From Podarcis filfolensis (Eukaryota): a stretch of DNA of 64,000 nt. The stretch is taken from the NCBI GenBank assembly GCA_964270895.1, contig OZ185446.1; one strand, 5' to 3'. Under the pieces are notes generated by a model. That model saw only the letters and a list, made by a program, of their open reading frames with translations, was not told the DNA's origin and searched no databases. Below are positions 12,440 through 48,949 of the stretch, piece by piece. The stretch's first letter is position 1. Each line of letters starts with the position of its first letter. The position numbers and the translations under genes were made by a program.

Positions 12440-12588
12440 NNNNNNNNNNNNNNNNNNNNNNNNNNNNNNNNNNNNNNNNNNNNNNNNNNNNNNNNNNNNN
12501 NNNNNNNNNNNNNNNNNNNNNNNNNNNNNNNNNNNNNNNNNNNNNNNNNNNNNNNNNNNNNNNNNNNNNNNNNNNNNNNNNNNNNNNN
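12440..12588. other. Assembly gap (149 N)
   Basis: Run of N characters. Confidence 1.
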
Positions 12589-39990: not shown

Positions 39991-42798
39991 ACCACCTCCT
40001 TCCCATTGCTAGTTTTAATGTATTTGAGCCATTTTGGCACATGTCCTAAGCAAGTGTGTTTGCTAAGGCTTTGTTCTCTATGTGTTTAATAATTAAATGT
40101 TTTCATGGATATTTTATCATATATTGTATTTTCTGTATCTGTAAATTCTCTGAGATCTCTGTTGGTTGTGAGATGTGATAAATAAATTTTAAACAAAACA
40201 AACCAAAACGGCTAACTTTATGCTTTCCACCATTAGGCGTGCGATAGGAATAAGGTTGATAGTCCTTGGCTCAACCTCTTATTTTAAAATACTGGTATTA
40301 CGTTGGTGATCCTCCAGTCCATAATGACTTTGTTGTTAATAGTCAGAAATGTCATATGCATGTTCTTTAAGAGCACTCTGGTATATGCCACCCAAACTTC
40401 ACAGCTTGTGAATTTAAAACTTTCCAATTAGCTTTTAAAATGTAATGCTTTTTTCACCCCCACTTAACAAAACTACTCAGATCCTCTGCCTGAAAGCAAC
40501 AAAGATGTTGGTATCTATCCAGTCTTTTCCATGGCGAAGGCTGATGCAGAGATTTCAGTTCACAACAGACTGTAAGCAATAAAGTCTTGGAATTTGTAAA
40601 AGTTATGAGAAGTCCAGTGGCATCTTCAGAAGCCTCAGCAAGATTTCTACAGCACTGGAGGCACTAAAAATAGATGTGATGACATTGGAAGGATGTGCAA
40701 AACAATGTGAAAGAATTTGTGACTTGCTTTCATGAATAGTTATAGTAGGGTATTTGAAAAAAAATGTTAAGCATGAATTTGGAAAGTGAAAGGCAATTTA
40801 TAGAGAGCAGCAAGGATTACACACACAAAAAACCTGGATTAATAAATGTTTACATCTGAAAGTAATGTGGAGTGTATTGTTTAGCATCATGCTATTAGCA
40901 CAGCTGTTTGTTATTGATCAGATTTCAGATTTCATTCATTTTTTAAAAAAGATTAATTAAATGAACTTTGCCTTAAAAGCTATTATGAGAAAGAAACACA
41001 GTCAGTGGACTGAATCAATTGATTAGAGCTCACCCAATACATGTTGCTGCCTGAGGCAGAACAGCAAATAGTATCCCCTCTCCGGGTCAAAGCCTAGAAG
41101 CCACGTCTAGCCAAGCTATTTTGGCACCTGGGGCAGAAATCCCAAGACAGCTTCTCCTCTCTGTCCCCTCCCCAGAAGTAAATGCCAATAATAAATGCAG
41201 TGACTAACAATCTGCTGCCCTTGCATGATGCTTCTCTCTGCCTGAGGGTAGGGCCAGCTGTGTCAATGCTGCCTTTTCACCCAGAGAAGGGGCTTGGATC
41301 CAGCAGACACATTTGTGAAGACAAGCGAGGAGAGGGGGCACTCGCTGATTCTCTCTTTCCTTGGCAGCCCCCTGAAAACCTGCTCTGGTGGCAGGGAGGC
41401 TGTAGGGGGGAAGATGAAAGAGGGGCAAAAATGGCCTCTCTCCACTTTTCCATTGAGGGTCCAAACACCTAACCTGACTGAAAAAATCCCACTGAATCCT
41501 ACCACTAGGTACAAAGCTGTGAGTATGAGGCTGGACTTCATGCAATCCACTCTGCACAGGGCATGAAGGGCTGGAAGGCAAAGCATCATGCAGCAGCTCC
41601 CACACGGGAGGTGCTTGTGAGAATCTTTTCCACAGATGAATTTTCTTCTCCTTGGCTGTCAAATCTAAGTAGGGTCTTTTATTATAAATGTCATGGGAGC
41701 CACTGAAGGCTCAAAGAGTTCTTTGACAGGGTACCACAAAGCTGAATATGCGACACTTTTTAGTTGTAGGTCTCTCTTCCTCTGAGAAAACCATCTTTTC
41801 ACTGGGTACCCTGCCTAGTCAGGCAGGTGGTTTGCTAAATATAGTTCCCATTGACTGCTAACTGGTGTTTTAATTTTGCTACTGTCAAGATAAAGCAGGG
41901 AAGCATATTTTTTCAATATTAAAAAGGCTAAATGGCTTCTTATGCTGCCACTCTGCTTTCTCTAGTACCTCACCTGTGAATTGCAGAGTTCTTTTGCAAA
42001 CCTGCAGATATTTGCTTCTTGTTCACTGAGAGAAGCAAATGCCATGTTCAGAAATTATTTTGCACATTTGTTCCATGAATCTGTATAGCTCCCTGGCATT
42101 CTTACAACTTACCTGGATTCCGTGTGTAAGCTATCCTGAGGAATGTTGCTACTCTTATCAAACTTGTTTGGACTTCTTTTGAATTTCCTCAGGTGTTTTA
42201 TCTAACACAAAATTCACTTCTGGTGGAATCTGATGTAACACTAAGTATGTCAAGCTCCCATAAGCCTGCCTCCTGACAACACGTCTAAGTGACAAAGAGA
42301 ATTGGAGTAAAAACAAGGCCATTGAGACACAAAAGGGAAGACTCAGCCCAAAGTTTGCACAAAAGCTCTTTTCAAAACAACAAGAGGCTGGTGAGAACTT
42401 AGATGGCTCGGTAGCCATGGAATATAGAGTGATTGACAACGGGAAAAGAAAAGTTAGCATGGGAGGAAGGGAAGAGCAGAATGTACCGCTTGGAGAGAAA
42501 GGCTGGCTGGAACCATGAAGAGCAGCACTCCTGCGGTCCTGGCTCTTCGTCAGACGTGGAACTAGAATCATCATGATGCTTGGAAGTCTTACGGATTTGA
42601 TTTAAGAAGTCAGTTCAGCATCCCAACATGGGTCTGCAGGTTACAGATTGATAAGGCATGGAACAGATCTATGATACACGGCTAAGCAGTAAGCAAAGGT
42701 GCTGATCCAACACTTGACATGGCCTCTGCGCTCTCCTATTGAGCAGGCATGGCTCTTTGTGCAGCTGAAATCCCAAGCCTTCAGCCTGGGCAAGCCAG

Positions 42799-43206
42799 TT
42801 TGGAGAATTTTTCTGGCAGCTTCCTTGCCCCATTTGGAGCCCACACGTTTCCGTGGCGTGTCTCTGCTCCCTCCGGGCTTCCAGCTCCAGTTAGCAGAGC
42901 TTAGCACAGCGTCAGAAGTAAGCCTTGTGTGCAGCAATAAATCAGGCAGACGCTCGGTGTCTTCCTTATCTTACAAGTAGCTTTAATCTCGTACAAAAAC
43001 AACAGATTGTTACTTTCCCGGTGACACGCAACTCATCTTCTCGGTACGCTCCGTGAGCGACTCAACTCACACTGCGTGTGTCTCTCTCTCTCTCTCTCTC
43101 AGAGATACTGACCACTCCCACTTCAGTCAGTGTTCTAAACACGCCTCCGAGAATGTGAGGCGTCACTCAGAACTTCTTAACCCTGTAAGTTCTGACTCTC
43201 TCAATA
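42799..43206 (-). repeat. 3' LTR of the Copia-derived element (408 bp)
   Basis: By eye, differs from 45424-45827 only by one C/T change at a CpG and two extra TC units. Confidence 0.95.
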
Positions 43207-45185
43207 CCCCCTCTCGCATCACATTCTGAGAGGACTTGTGAACACACCTTTACAGACCTCTGTGTGTCCCACACCTTCCCACCTGCCTGTTGAGTCTCCT
43301 CACAAATCTCTGGTTCGCACTGTGCGAGACCAACCCACGCATTTGTGACTCGAAACCTCTCAGGTGGAATTCCCTTTGTTGCCCGTGAAGACCGCCTGGG
43401 CACAAACTGGGGTTCTTCTTCTGACCCACTGGGGCCAGCAAGAGCGTCTTCTTCATCAGACTCCCCCTCTGACTTGACCCGTCTGTGAGCTTTCTCCATC
43501 ACTCTAACAGGAGATGAGGGCTCACTCTTGGACACTCCTTTCACAACCTGTGGAGACGCCTCCCCCTGGTGCTGATCCTGATCATCGACCAGATCACCAT
43601 TACCTGGCTCTCCCTCCTCCTCAGATTCGGACAGACAATCTGAGACAATGTCATGGCTGACTTTACGCCTTGAGCTACTTTCCTGCTGCTCTTTGAACTC
43701 AGCATGCTTACTGACCAGAAGCTTGGTCTGATCACCTTCTGGGTACGCAAATCTCCACCCCTTGGTCGCGGGTTCATACCCACAGAAGATCATTTCCTGG
43801 TACCTTGGACCACCCTCTTGCTGCAAACACTTTGGTACAGGCACCATGGCCCTGCAACCAAACGAACGGAAGAAATGCACCTGCGGCTTCTGTCCGTTGA
43901 GCAAGAAATATGGGGTGTCACCTACCACTGCATTGTAGCACCTGTTCATCGTGAAATTGGCTGTTTTTACTGCCTCCCCCCAGAAACTGTGAGGCAACCC
44001 AGAGTCACTCAATAGGACCTCTGAAACTTGAACCAGAGCCTTACTCCTCAGCTCTGCCACGCCACTCTCCTGAGGCGAAGTCACCTTGTGACGTATCCCC
44101 CTCTGGCGAAAGAAACTCTTTAGAGCAGACCCAGTGACCTCAAAACAAACCATGTACCCCTCCTGTAAAAGACACGGTACAGACAAAAGACAACAATTCA
44201 GTCCCGGCGCCACGTAGACTTCCAGCTGCGCCTGCAGGAAAGAAAGATAAACATTCCCAGACTTTTTTACAAGCCTTTGTGACCCATCAGCAAAACACAC
44301 TGTTTTCCCAGCTGAAACAGCTCTGCAGTTCTTTATCTGGACACCAGGTGACTCAGGCACAAGATGTCTATTTGCAGCAGAGTCAATGACCCAACGTAGC
44401 ACATTGTCCTTCGTTGCCTTAGCAACAGAGTTCCTTCTGCCCCCCTCCTTGGGACCTTTACAGGTGTCTTTCAAAACAGCCATTGACGCAAACAGCTGAT
44501 AAGCACCTCCTTCCCCTTCCGGCCGTCCCTGGGACTTTCCACGCTGGCCTCTTCTCCCGGGCTGGTTCCCATGGGAAATGTCCTTGGGACTTTCCTGCCC
44601 TTTCTCTGGACAGCATCTGCGCAGGTGTTCAGGGGAACCGCAAACAAAACAGCAACGAATGGAAAACTTTACAAAGTGGCCTTTGGACTTCTGTGCCCCC
44701 CCACTCTTGCCAGCAGCACTCTTTAAGGCTTTTCTTTGAGGCTTGGGGACGTGGCCTTTGGCTTCCAGCTCTGTGGTTTCTCTGCAAACCTTCTCCAGCT
44801 CCTGCCAAACAGCCTTGGCACTTTCAAGACCCTTGGACTGGCCTTTCTGGCCTGCACCCCCATTCCTGGGTGCACAGCCTCCAGAGGAACAGCTTGCCTC
44901 TGCTTTCCTCTTCCCAGCTCTCAGCAGCTTTCCAGCACACGGCTGCCCATCACGTTGGCGTGTCAAAGCATTGCAGCAGCTTCCTGACACGGCTCCAGCC
45001 CCCCTTGTGCTTCCTGGGCGTTGCACAGCCCCTCCTGGACTTGCAGCTTCTGCAGCGTCTGTGCAGCATCTGGCCCCCTCTGGTGTGGCTCCCACTGCAA
45101 CCTTCAGTGCCTGCCACGCGACCCAGGGCTCCTTCCCGTCCGCCTCTTCAAAAGGGACTGCACGCAATTCATGGCTGTCTGCCAT
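43167..45185 (-). CDS. 672-aa Gag-protease-integrase(C-half) fusion polyprotein of Copia origin
   Basis: SAKAVWQEL (gag); CCHC knuckle C179-C182-H187-C192 (44610-44651); protease WVIDSAANRHL...VYVAPGLNCCLLSV; IN C-half GIRHKVTSPQESGVAE...SGLPHSFWGEAVKTA...SFGC...FCGYEPATKGWR; RRSSR..PPERF linker; stop 40 nt inside the 3' LTR. Confidence 0.85.
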   Translation of the reverse strand: MADSHELRAVPFEEADGKEPWVAWQALKVAVGATPEGARCCTDAAEAASPGGAVQRPGSTRGAGAVSGSCCNALTRQRDGQPCAGKLLRAGKRKAEASCSSGGCAPRNGGAGQKGQSKGLESAKAVWQELEKVCRETTELEAKGHVPKPQRKALKSAAGKSGGAQKSKGHFVKFSIRCCFVCGSPEHLRRCCPEKGQESPKDISHGNQPGRRGQRGKSQGRPEGEGGAYQLFASMAVLKDTCKGPKEGGRRNSVAKATKDNVLRWVIDSAANRHLVPESPGVQIKNCRAVSAGKTVCFADGSQRLVKKSGNVYLSFLQAQLEVYVAPGLNCCLLSVPCLLQEGYMVCFEVTGSALKSFFRQRGIRHKVTSPQESGVAELRSKALVQVSEVLLSDSGLPHSFWGEAVKTANFTMNRCYNAVVGDTPYFLLNGQKPQVHFFRSFGCRAMVPVPKCLQQEGGPRYQEMIFCGYEPATKGWRFAYPEGDQTKLLVSKHAEFKEQQESSSRRKVSHDIVSDCLSESEEEGEPGNGDLVDDQDQHQGEASPQVVKGVSKSEPSSPVRVMEKAHRRVKSEGESDEEDALAGPSGSEEEPQFVPRRSSRATKGIPPERFRVTNAWVGLAQCEPEICEETQQAGGKVWDTQRSVKVCSQVLSECDARGGIERVRTYRVKKF
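43207..43215 (-). promoter_or_regulatory. Polypurine tract (GAGAGGGGG)
   Basis: Immediately upstream of the 3' LTR in element orientation. Confidence 0.85.
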
Positions 45186-45415
45186 CTTCTCCCCCGGGGC
45201 CCAGCTTACTTACAGACAGTAGTAGCTCCTCCCGGCACCCGGTACAGCACAGCTCCTCCCAGCCGGCCCCTTGCCTCACGATCAAAGGCACAGCTCCCCA
45301 GCTGGCTCCAGCTGGCTTGGCTTTCAGCTTTTCTCCACTGCCCTCTTCCTTGGCAGGAGATCACACAGCACACACCGGCACGTACTTGGCTTGCTTCACA
45401 GAGTCAGCTGATCTT

Positions 45416-45423
45416 CCATAACC
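45416..45423 (-). promoter_or_regulatory. Primer-binding site, partial (GGTTATGG), half-tRNA-iMet type
   Basis: Directly follows the 5' LTR; matches the first 8 nt of the copia-type PBS GGTTATGGGCCCAG. Confidence 0.7.
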
Positions 45424-45827
45424 TTTGGAGAATTTTTCTGGCAGCTTCCTTGCCCCATTTGGAGCCCACACGTTTCCGTGGCGTGTCTCTGCTCCCTCCG
45501 GGCTTCCAGCTCCAGTTAGCAGAGCTTAGCACAGCGTCAGAAGTAAGCCTTGTGTGCAGCAATAAATCAGGCAGACGCTCGGTGTCTTCCTTATCTTACA
45601 AGTAGCTTTAATCTCGTACAAAAACAACAGATCGTTACTTTCCCGGTGACACGCAACTCATCTTCTCGGTACGCTCCGTGAGCGACTCAACTCACACTGC
45701 GTGTGTCTCTCTCTCTCTCTCAGAGATACTGACCACTCCCACTTCAGTCAGTGTTCTAAACACGCCTCCGAGAATGTGAGGCGTCACTCAGAACTTCTTA
45801 ACCCTGTAAGTTCTGACTCTCTCAATA
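45424..45827 (-). repeat. 5' LTR of the Copia-derived element (404 bp)
   Basis: Direct repeat of 42799-43206. Confidence 0.95.
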
Positions 45828-46043
45828 GCCAGTGGGTACTCTTTCCACAGAAGCTGAGCATTCAAGGTTTGTTCATGCTGGCACTGAGCCCTCTGCATCC
45901 TCGGAGATGGGGCAGAGTCTGCAGGGCTGTCAAATTGATTCTCAAATTGACTTTTCCCAAAGTAGAACTTGATTAGGTTGGGAACTGACCACTCCCCCCA
46001 TTTTTCTTTCTGCAATGCTTGTTTCAGGGGCAAAGGAATGCTT

Positions 46044-48949
46044 GTTGCTGTTTAGTCGTGTCCGACTCTTTGTGACCTCATGGACCAGAGCACGCCAGGC
46101 ACTGCTGTCTTCCACTGCCTCCTGCAGTTTGGTTGGTAGCTTCGAGAACACTGTCCAACCATCTCGTCCTCTGTCGTCCCCTTCTCCTTGTGCCCTCAAT
46201 CTTTCCCAGCATCGGGGTCTTTTCCAGGGAGTCTTTATGGTCCAGCTCTCACTTCCATACATCACTACTGGGAAAACCATGGCTTTAACTATACGGACCT
46301 TTGTTGGCAAGGTGATGTCTCTGCTTTTTAAGATGCTGTCTAGGTTTGTCATTGCTTTTCTCACAAGAAGCAGGCATCTTTGAATTTCGTGACTGCTGTC
46401 ACCATTTGCAGTGATCATGGAGCCCAAGAAAATAAAATCTCTCACTGCCTCCATTCCTTCCCCTTCTATTTGCCAGGAGGTGATGGGCCCAGTGGCCATG
46501 ATCTTCGTTTTTTTGATGTTGAGCTTCAGACCACATTTTGCGCTCTCCTCTTTCACCCTCATTAAAAGGTTCTTTAATTCCTCCTCACTTTCTGCCATCA
46601 AGGTTGTGTCATCTGCATATCTGAGGTTGTTGATATTTCTTCCGGCAATCTTAATTCCGGTTTGGGATCCATCCAGCCCACCTTTCGCATGATGAATTCT
46701 GCATATAAGTTAAATAAGCAGGGAGACAATATACAGCCTTGCCATACTCCTTTCCCAATTTTGAACCAATCAGCTGTTCCATATCCAGTTCTAACTGTAG
46801 CTTCTTGTCCCACATAGAAATTTCTCAGGAGACAGATGAGGTGATCAGGCACTCCCATTTCTTTAAGAACTTGCCATAGTTTGCTGTGGTCGACACAGTC
46901 AAAGGCTTTTGCATAGTCAATGAAGCAGAAGTAGATGTCTTTCTGGAACTCTCTAGCTTTCTCCATAATCCAGCGCATGTTTGCAATTTGGTCTCTGGTT
47001 CCTCTGCCCCTTCGAAATCCAGCTTGCACTTCTGGGAGTTCTCGGTCCACATACTGCTTAAGCCTGCCTTGTAGAATTTTAAGCATAACCTTGCTAGTGT
47101 GTGAAATGAGTGCAATTGTGCGGTAGTTGGAACATTCTTTGGCACTGCCCTTCTTTGGGATTGGGATGTAGACTGATCTTCTGCAATCCTCTGGCCACTG
47201 CTGAGTTTTCCAAATTTGCTGGCATATTGAGTGTAGCACCTTAACAGCATCATCTTTTAAAATTTTAAATAGTTCAGCTGGAATATCATCACTTCCACTG
47301 GCCTTGTTATTAGCAGTGCTTTCTAAGGCCCATTTGACTTCACTCTCCAGGATGTCTGGCTCAAGGTCAGCAACCACACTACCTGGGGTGTACGAGACAT
47401 CCATATCTTTCTGGTATAATTCCTCTGTGTATTCTTGCCACCTCTTCTTGATGTCTTCTGCTTCTGTTAGGTACTTTCCACTTTTGTTCTTTATTATGGT
47501 AATCTTTGTACGAAATGTTCCTTTCATATCTCCAATTTTCTTGAACAGATCTCTGGTTTTTCCCATTCTATTGTCTTCCTCTATTTCTTTGCATTGCTCG
47601 TTTAAGAAGGCCTTCTTGTCTCTCCTTGCTATGTTTTGGAAATCTGCATTCAATTTCCTGTATCTTTGACTATCTCCCTTGCATTTTGCTTGCCTTCTCT
47701 CCCCTGCTATTTGTAAGGCCTCATTGGACAGCCACTTTGCTTTCTTGCATTTCCTTTTTATTGGGATGGTTTTCGTTGCTGCCTCCTGTATAATGTTGTG
47801 ATCCTCCACCTATAGTTCTTCAGGCACTCTGTCCACCAAATCTAAATCCTTAAACTTGTTCCTCACTTCCACTGTGTATTCATAAGGGATTTGACATAGA
47901 TTGTATCTTACCAGCCCAGTGGTTTTTCCTACTTTCTTCAGTTTAAGCTTGAATTTTGCTATAAGAAGCTGATGATCTGAGCCACAGTCAGCTCCAGGTC
48001 TTGTTTTTGCTGACTGTATAGAGCTTCTCCATCTTTGACTGCAGAGAATATAATCAATCTGATTTTCATGCTGCCCACCTGGTGATGTCCATGTGTAGAG
48101 TCGTCTCTTGTGTTGTTGGAAAAGCGTGTTTGTGATGACCAGCTTGTTCTCTTGGCAGAACTCTATTAGCCTTTTCCCTGCTTCGTTTTGAACTCCAAGG
48201 CCAAACTTGCCCATTGTTCCTTTTATCTCTTGACGCCCTACTTTAGCATTCCAATCCCCTATAATGAGAAGAACATCCTTCTTTGGTGTCATTTCTAGAA
48301 GGTGTTGTAAGTCTTCATAGAAGTGGTCAATTTCAGTTTCTTCAGCACCAGTAGTTGGTGCATAAACTTGGATTATTGTGATGTTAAAAGGACTGCCTTG
48401 GATTCGTATCGAGATCATTCTATCATTTTTGAGATTGCATCCCAGTATAGCTTTCGCTACTCTTTTGTTGACTATGAGGGCTACTCCATTTCTTTTACGG
48501 GATTCTTGCCCACAGTAGTAGATATGATGGTCATCTGAACTGAATTCACCCATTCCTGTCCATTTTAGTTCACTGATGCCCGGGATGTCAATATTTATTC
48601 TTGCCATTTCATTTTTGACCACATCCAACTTACCAAGGTTCATGGTTCTTACATTCCAGGTTCCTATGCAATATTTTTCTTTACAGCATTGGACTTTCCT
48701 TTCGCTTCCAGGCATATCTGCAACTGAGCGACCTTTTGGCTTTGGCCCAGCCGCTTCATCAGCTCTGAATCTACTTTTATTTGTCCTCCCCTCTTCCTCA
48801 GCAGCATGTTGGACGCCTTCCGACCTGAGGGGCTCATCTTCCAGCGTCACAACTTTTATATGCCTGTTGTCTTTGTCCATGGAGTTTTCTTGGCAGGGAT
48901 ACTGGAGTGGCTTGCCGGTTCCTCCTCCAGGTGGATCATGTTTGGTCAA
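46044..48949 (-). pseudogene. Disrupted BovB ORF: APE endonuclease plus reverse transcriptase
   Basis: IGTWNVRTM, GDWNAKVG and DCGSDHQL (APE, 47810-48949); NYRTIALIS and FIDYAKAFD; YADD at 46608-46619. Frameshifts near 47810 and 46680 and deletions near 46225 and 46130. Confidence 0.9.

Follow-up and report, generated by a model that had tools for sequence, protein, structure and literature searches.

A young, reverse-transcriptase-less Copia element with one long open reading frame in the lizard Podarcis filfolensis, and its place in a probably old non-autonomous lineage

Structure of the element

We analysed a 64,000-nt window of genomic DNA from Podarcis filfolensis (GenBank assembly GCA_964270895.1, contig OZ185446.1), in which a retrotransposon of 3,029 bp occupies positions 42799-45827 on the minus strand. 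Its two long terminal repeats (LTRs), in direct orientation, enclose one open reading frame (ORF; 43167-45185, minus strand, ATG to TGA) that encodes 672 aa related to the Copia polyprotein and includes no reverse transcriptase (RT). We propose that the element is a young insertion belonging to an old RT-less Copia lineage, that its frame has been kept by selection and that its protein probably aids its own RNA.

The direct repeats (42799-43209 and 45424-45830) trim to LTRs of 408 and 404 nt, whose sequences are the same but for one substitution and a (GA)n indel of 4 nt. This microsatellite (43081-43100 and 45706-45721, with 10 and 8 units) is the sole length difference between the LTRs. A perfect 5-bp target-site duplication, CTGGC, brackets the element. 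Because the LTRs are nearly identical and the duplication is perfect, the element is a young one, recently inserted by the normal LTR route. The features are as follows, in the order in which they are transcribed; three elements used in comparison are described further below (L001, from Podarcis muralis; L002, an autonomous lacertid Copia; and L003).

45828-45832, minus strand: upstream copy of the target-site duplication, reading CTGGC on this strand and identical in sequence to 42794-42798.
45424-45827, minus strand: 5′ LTR, 404 nt, with non-canonical termini TATTG...CCAAA (repeat comparison).
45415-45423, minus strand: GGTTATGGA, resembling a primer-binding site (PBS), directly after the 5′ LTR (comparison with L001, L002 and L003).
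45186-45414, minus strand: untranslated leader, G-rich and T-poor (G 0.39, T 0.18).
43167-45185, minus strand: ORF of 672 codons, coordinates including the stop codon, which lies 40 nt into the 3′ LTR (ORF call; homology in this frame alone).
44733-45185, minus strand: degenerate remnant of the Gag capsid, aa 1-151 (alignment, composition, AlphaFold).
44610-44651, minus strand: predicted zinc knuckle CX2CX4HX4C, aa 179-192 (pattern; weak zf-CCHC match; AlphaFold confidence, pLDDT, about 80).
44154-44393, minus strand: protease-like beta-barrel (Pol_BBD), aa 265-344, whose DSG motif has become DSA (44376-44384; Pfam, alignment, AlphaFold).
44139-44144, minus strand: in-frame junction F348/E349 between the protease barrel and the integrase core (alignments).
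43896-44141, minus strand: C-terminal helices of the integrase catalytic core, aa 349-430, with E378 in VAEL (alignment; pLDDT >90).
43680-43895, minus strand: integrase SH3-like C-terminal domain, aa 431-502 (Pfam PF25597, E 2e-14; pLDDT >90).
43320-43679, minus strand: linker between integrase and RT, acidic and Ser-rich, aa 503-622, with the conserved blocks SEPSSPV, KSEGES and PRRSSRATKGIPPERF (alignment; predicted disordered).
43221-43319, minus strand: what is left of the N-terminal lead-in to RT, aa 623-655, from CEPE... to the point where the RT/RNase H deletion begins (alignments).
43207-43217, minus strand: polypurine tract (PPT) GCGAGAGGGGG, read through by the ORF.
42799-43206, minus strand: 3′ LTR, 408 nt, encoding the last 12-13 residues of the ORF and its stop codon (repeat comparison).
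42794-42798, minus strand: downstream copy of the target-site duplication, CTGGC.

The signals for replication match those of autonomous lacertid Copia. An 8-nt PBS core, GGTTATGG, stands at the same position in the window element, L001, L002 and L003, and a ninth base, A, is common to the first three and not found in L003; the PPT 11-mer is identical to the one that precedes the LTR of L002. The LTR ends read TA...AA in the window element, TG...CA in L001 and TG...TTA in L002, and the 5-bp duplication was cleanly made despite the non-canonical ends. We therefore classify the element as a Ty1/Copia-derived LTR retrotransposon: it has LTRs with a target-site duplication, a PBS and a PPT, protein homology and phylogenetic placement within Copia, and an integrase ahead of the RT lead-in.

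The surrounding window contains no second copy of the element, no solo LTR, no other Copia fragment and no paralogous empty site, and no tRNA gene lies within its 64 kb. The insertion is just 3′ of the coding region of an RTE/BovB-like long interspersed nuclear element (LINE; 45942-48949, minus strand), comprising an endonuclease (47810-48949), an RT (46598-47809) and a C-terminal ORF (45942-46601), its frame being in three pieces. Elsewhere, a run of 149 N occupies 12440-12588.

The encoded protein and what it lacks

The ORF frame is stop-free for 2,043 nt, and its openness is not a chance effect, because the remaining sense frames are broken by 33 and 45 stops over the whole 3,032-nt element. 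A blastx search found homology to relatives in the ORF frame only. The first-pass annotation of this DNA had described a stop-free 672-codon ORF filling a 3-kb element with two LTRs, and the ORF, the LTRs and the target-site duplication all bear this out. Three long antisense ORFs, of up to 312 aa (44483-45421, 44743-45222 and 45021-45605, plus strand), overlie the leader and the N-terminal gag part (gag-N). They look like an effect of composition rather than a gene, as the sense strand here is G-rich and T-poor, which leaves few stops on both strands.

Pfam identifies the SH3_retrovirus domain (PF25597, aa 431-502, E 2e-14), a sub-threshold Pol_BBD (aa 265-344, E 1.7e-4) and, weakly, zf-CCHC, where the knuckle itself was recognized by pattern. 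There was no Pfam match to rve, gag_pre-integrs, Retrotran_gag_2, RVT_2 or RNase H, even when pieces were scanned singly at E 10, and neither an NCBIfam scan nor a PDB sequence search returned a match. Of the profiles proposed beforehand, SH3 matches, Pol_BBD and zf-CCHC match weakly, and Copia gag and rve do not match. AlphaFold predicts the integrase helices and SH3-like domain with pLDDT >90 and the barrel with 70-82, and the best PDB fold matches of the predicted structure are retroviral integrases. An exhaustive HMMER search gave 18,659 matches at E<=0.001, and all 11 of the relatives that were domain-scanned or aligned are Copia-type; the best full-length relatives are 43-44% identical.

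We compared the protein with intact lacertid Copia polyproteins of 1385 aa. The protease barrel ends in ...GYMVCF (F348) and is fused there to E349-VTG (44141), which belongs to the part of the integrase core just behind the second catalytic Asp. The resulting gap of 194 aa relative to L001 removes the HHCC zinc finger and both catalytic Asp of the integrase; E378 in VAEL, the last residue of the catalytic triad, is kept. In the RT lead-in, homology stops after about 35 codons, and about 1.43 kb of RT-RNase H is absent compared to L002. Both losses had been read from the sequence beforehand, including the position of the integrase junction, and both are seen in the Copia alignments and the Pfam scans. 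The motifs that had been called drifted are likewise real in the alignments: DSA at aa 268-270, VAEL at 376 and SPQ without its preceding PY. The window element is without RT (RVT_2), RNase H, HHCC, two of the D,D,E residues and the D-S/T-G of an autonomous Copia, and its protease is probably inactive, to judge from DSA.

Such autonomous elements are present in lacertids, judging from a 90% cluster in which intact ORFs of 1385-1386 aa stand with annotated Podarcis lilfordi proteins (at least 90% identity). The accompanying remark that Copia is scarce in amniotes needs qualifying on this account.

A decayed capsid

The earlier reading that the second half of the capsid has been lost is roughly right, with gaps of 16 aa and 31-48 aa relative to relatives and a stretch before the zinc knuckle that is 56 aa shorter, but it missed that the first half is itself degenerate. 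The start of the protein (MADSHE..PF..G..W) is homologous to that of relatives, and beyond the first 25 residues nothing but a few short motifs can be aligned. Hydrophobic residues make up 12% of the capsid part, compared to 30% in relatives; its DNA has G 0.38 and T 0.16. AlphaFold points to disorder here (pLDDT <50 for aa 32-118). The label Gag is thus generous for a region with no capsid Pfam match, few hydrophobic residues, predicted disorder and near-neutral change.

Judged by its composition, the gag-N frame is nonetheless being kept open: about 5 stops are expected over its 133 codons and none is present (P about 0.006). Two other origins for this unalignable sequence were considered. 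A frameshifted capsid is ruled out because blastx homology falls in the ORF frame only, and tandem-repeat expansion was rejected, as only two-copy micro-repeats of 9-13 nt were found.

An RT-less relative in Podarcis muralis

The nearest protein in sequence is P0006 (59% identity), which NCBI models in Podarcis muralis with a length of 315 aa. Its locus, L001 (OZ076959.1), holds an element of 3,927 bp (L001 3394-7320) with 426-nt LTRs that are 100% identical and canonical (TG...CA), a 5-bp target-site duplication and the same GGTTATGGA PBS. Its single ORF of 954 aa contains a Retrotran_gag_2 capsid (E 1e-30), a knuckle, a protease barrel, HHCC, rve with D,D,E, SH3 and the linker; Pfam finds neither RVT_2 nor RNase H in it. 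In both elements the ORF reads through the PPT into the LTR. L001 is the window element's nearest relative, with 56% amino acid identity from the protease to the linker, the same region of RT and RNase H deleted and the same derived motifs. It differs in having a full capsid and a full integrase (3.9 kb compared to 3.0 kb), and its LTRs are unrelated to those of the window element at the blastn level. L001 lies antisense within a RhoGEF/spectrin/CRAL-TRIO gene, and only the last 315 aa of its frame are annotated by NCBI, as 'uncharacterized protein LOC144327940'.

The deletion of RT has closely similar borders in the two elements. From PRRSSR to the LTR their DNA is 69% identical, with no large break across the RT junction. 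Each retains 35-47 codons beyond CEPE/CDSE, followed at a distance of at most 20 nt by the PPT, and the breakpoints of the two differ in position by no more than about 25 nt. In a maximum-likelihood tree of the integrase C-half and SH3 domain, the window element and L001 form a clade with support 100/99 and a stem of 0.53, sister to P0005, which keeps part of its RT, and then to the autonomous P0161. The supports that place the window element among Copia polyproteins are 100/99, 98/92 and 95/86. The two elements also have rare changes in common, counted among 47 aligned Copia proteins with denominators that vary by site: DSA (G in 24/31), loss of the N of QNG (N374; N in 42/44), ER to EL (R in 40/44) and, ahead of SPQ, a 3-aa deletion that no other inspected row of the alignment has.

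Because the breakpoints nearly coincide, the clade is strongly supported and the rare derived changes are held in common, the loss of RT is probably ancestral to the window element and L001; since their synonymous sites are saturated, it is probably also old. The conserved protease and integrase positions changed in the common ancestor, which suggests that this ancestor was already relieved of enzymatic duty and hence non-autonomous. The claim of an RT-less, non-autonomous Copia lineage is in this respect upheld by an independent element. RT may have been lost by template switching or through a retrotransposed spliced RNA. Both deletion breakpoints map in L002 (2976-2987 and 4395-4425) to a TGCCAG microhomology, and L002 has splice-like motifs, AAG|GTACC near the 5′ breakpoint and a T-rich tract with CAG before the PPT. 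The window element keeps 6 nt that align upstream of this CAG, which counts against a spliced origin, itself only an idea.

We rejected P0005 as a member of the RT-less lineage, as its deletion is a different, partial one and its RNase H is frameshifted. Its locus (L003 688-4059, on a contig of ENA ERZ27260045) has about 190 aa of the RT palm deleted in frame, RNase H continuing in another frame after the called stop, and intact protease and integrase motifs.

Selection on the reading frame

Synonymous sites between the window element and L001 are saturated (proportion of synonymous differences, pS, 0.58-0.88). From protease to linker, the proportion of nonsynonymous differences (pN) is 0.275 against a pS of 0.668 (pN/pS 0.41), while gag-N has a pN of 0.60 and a pS of 0.74 (pN/pS 0.81). 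Read from these ratios, the protease-like barrel, integrase C-half, SH3-like domain and linker are under purifying selection, and the N-terminal half of the capsid is nearly neutral. The regions so held include the confidently folded ones (barrel, integrase helices and SH3). On the same saturation, the split between the two elements is old and beyond dating, and we abandoned a date from synonymous divergence.

We assigned nonsynonymous change to each branch by a three-taxon calculation of nonsynonymous divergence (dN), with P0161 as the third taxon. The window branch has 0.117 from protease to linker and 1.05 in gag-N; the L001 branch has 0.225 and 0.155, respectively. The window lineage thus let its capsid decay while holding the protease-to-linker region. 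In the integrase C-half and SH3 tree, the window tip branch (0.14) is likewise shorter than that of L001 (0.68). The proposal that the ORF is under selection therefore holds for its C-terminal two-thirds; for the specific combination of partial Gag, protease and integrase C-half, selection is no more than a possibility.

Searches for siblings

We searched protein collections and metagenome contigs, which include few lacertid transposable-element ORFs, for relatives with the same junctions. A word-index protein search with the whole ORF gave only four distant Copia matches. With the junction-spanning aa 255-520 it gave nothing, and P0006 as query retrieved only itself; such blanks count for little, since the junction search missed P0006 too. 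Exact look-ups found neither the 672-aa nor the 954-aa product on record, no protein of similar length was present among 1.84 billion representatives, and a scan of metagenome contigs found no relative. This absence is weak evidence, because the collections lack even the 954-aa frame of L001. The gag and integrase-N junctions are so far unique, as the sole relative found keeps full Gag and integrase; that this very form is a selected, multi-copy one, as had been suggested, is thus no more than possible.

Discussion

We favour, with a probability of roughly 0.6, the reading in which a young, non-autonomous Copia-derived element represents an old RT-less lineage, with its frame kept by selection and its protein probably aiding its own RNA. 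The lineage would have lost RT and RNase H long ago and kept a frame of Gag, protease and integrase, the form still seen in L001. In the window branch, the capsid would then have decayed and lost some of its length, and an in-frame deletion would have taken out the integrase zinc finger together with the first two Asp. The target-site duplication and near-identical LTRs show that the element moved without an RT of its own; as it also has no complete integrase and probably no active protease, it would have done so only with proteins supplied in trans by an autonomous Copia.

We infer that the 672-aa protein acts in cis, to the benefit of the element RNA from which it is translated. Its zinc knuckle could bind the element RNA, while the integrase C-half and linker could dock onto the integrase, RT or particle of the helper. 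Such a role is plausible because the fusion protein of the mouse IAP 1-delta-1 element promotes its own retrotransposition in cis (PMC6466679), and because active recombinant Ty1 RT has been made as a fusion with 115 C-terminal integrase residues (PMC2148107, citing its ref. 24). A bolder version, which we hold tentatively and think unlikely, would place the element in a long-lived protein-coding satellite lineage of Copia in a vertebrate. Its selected product would be not Gag but an adaptor of knuckle, dead barrel, integrase C-half and linker, made from the parasite's RNA, that captures the helper's RT, integrase or particle in cis. If true, the adaptor would be a second route, beside gag-only elements, by which LTR hyperparasites keep a gene.

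Several observations weigh against the reading we favour. The nearest sampled autonomous element is distant, with only about 44-45% protein identity and different LTR ends; the window element's own ends (TA...AA) are non-canonical. The RT-less clade has only two members found, and no sibling with the window element's gag or integrase junctions appeared in the protein collections, the metagenome contigs or the window. The selection signal is not assignable to the time after the integrase N-terminal deletion, nor strictly to the time after RT loss. Finally, the TGCCAG and splice-like motifs at both L002 breakpoints may mean that RT was lost recurrently and independently, which, on the alignments, would also need parallel motif changes.

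The main alternative is that the window element is a single dead-end copy, its gag and integrase-N deletions dating from the last replication cycle (by template switching in reverse transcription) or from after insertion and being in frame by chance, its product functionless and its conservation inherited from an L001-type ancestor. The unique junctions and the complete Gag and integrase of L001 fit this account; the near-identical LTRs would have left no time for decay, and two large deletions would both be in frame by chance about once in nine times. However, gag-N has changed at about 7-9 times the rate seen in L001 or in the window element's own protease-to-linker region and is still open, which argues for a long gag-defective history rather than a last-cycle accident. 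Seven further gaps of 7-16 aa in the protein alignment with L001 are also all in frame, and the missing siblings count for less in databases so poor in lacertid transposable-element ORFs that even the 954-aa L001 frame is missing. We consider a dead-end copy unlikely, though a possibility to be taken seriously.

An inhibitory product is improbable. A truncated integrase or nucleocapsid fragment might poison helper particles or intasomes, as copy-number control or as restriction that benefits the host. Truncated Gag p22 restricts yeast Ty1, and the integrase core helices and SH3-like domain contribute to multimer contacts in retroviral integrases; here both are kept, catalysis is lacking and the retained part is conserved. 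Against this, the gene sits in a mobile, very recent insertion with a target-site duplication and not at any fixed locus of the host, fixed orthologous copies are not known, and an element that blocked its own helper would not spread easily. That the ORF is a domesticated host gene derived from Copia is harder still to credit: it is long and intact with constrained domains, but it ends inside an LTR, between intact, near-identical LTRs with a target-site duplication, PBS and PPT, next to a LINE in repeat-rich DNA, and the 1.84 billion representatives contain nothing of similar length. We likewise give very little credence to an assembly collapse or mis-join that removed RT, in favour of which we found nothing: no N and no gap interrupts the sequence at any junction, the reading frame runs through unbroken, and an independent element from another assembly (L001) has a homologous junction region.

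On the reading we favour, an RT-less lizard Copia lineage would have kept an open frame through saturating divergence, while one of its branches lost the capsid and conserved the integrase C-half and the RT linker. If confirmed, this would be a natural experiment on which parts of the Copia polyprotein serve a parasite of Copia and on how integrase and RT interact in Pseudoviridae, and it would also show present-day activity of Copia and its parasites in lacertid genomes. Its practical bearing is modest, in that annotation mistakes such elements for host genes, as with the 315 aa of the 954-aa L001 frame.

Comparison with known systems

In the usual description, a non-autonomous LTR retrotransposon either codes for nothing (LARD, TRIM, ETn) or encodes gag alone (TR-GAG). 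The window element does not fit the definition of LARD and TRIM elements, which have no coding capacity, as it has a 672-codon ORF with constrained domains. Its likeness to autonomous lacertid Copia (L002/P0161; one ORF of 1385 aa) extends to the PBS core, PPT 11-mer, 5-bp target-site duplication, domain order and Gag start; the two fall in the same well-supported clade, and the 90% cluster of the autonomous element includes the Podarcis lilfordi proteins. Identity is nevertheless 36% over the whole alignment and about 45% from protease to linker, and the autonomous element has the capsid, HHCC, DDE, RT, RNase H and intact DSG and PYSPQENxVAER motifs that the window element does not.

Plant TR-GAG elements are shorter than 4 kb, have LTRs, a PBS and a PPT, a single ORF and no RT, and bear signs of recent mobility; the sole product of their ORF is a recognisable GAG precursor (PMC4350172). 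At 3,029 bp, with a single ORF and no RT, the window element is similar, but it is found in a vertebrate, has no recognisable GAG and carries parts of protease and integrase. In it the capsid has decayed, while the protease barrel and integrase C-half are conserved. Some sugar beet families retain GAG/PROT together with decayed POL remnants (PMC13570524).

The mouse IAP 1-delta-1 element also arose by an in-frame internal deletion that created a new fusion ORF, and it uses a helper in trans (PMC6466679); in the window element, in-frame fusion junctions occur at F348/E349 and at the RT deletion. IAP 1-delta-1 differs in being a class II endogenous retrovirus in which one gag-pol deletion, of 1.9 kb, made the fusion, and in having a demonstrated activity and copy number. 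The window element is thus an RT-less, protein-coding Copia derivative in a vertebrate, of a partly coding kind already known from plants and mouse: an unusual but not unprecedented parasite of a parasite.

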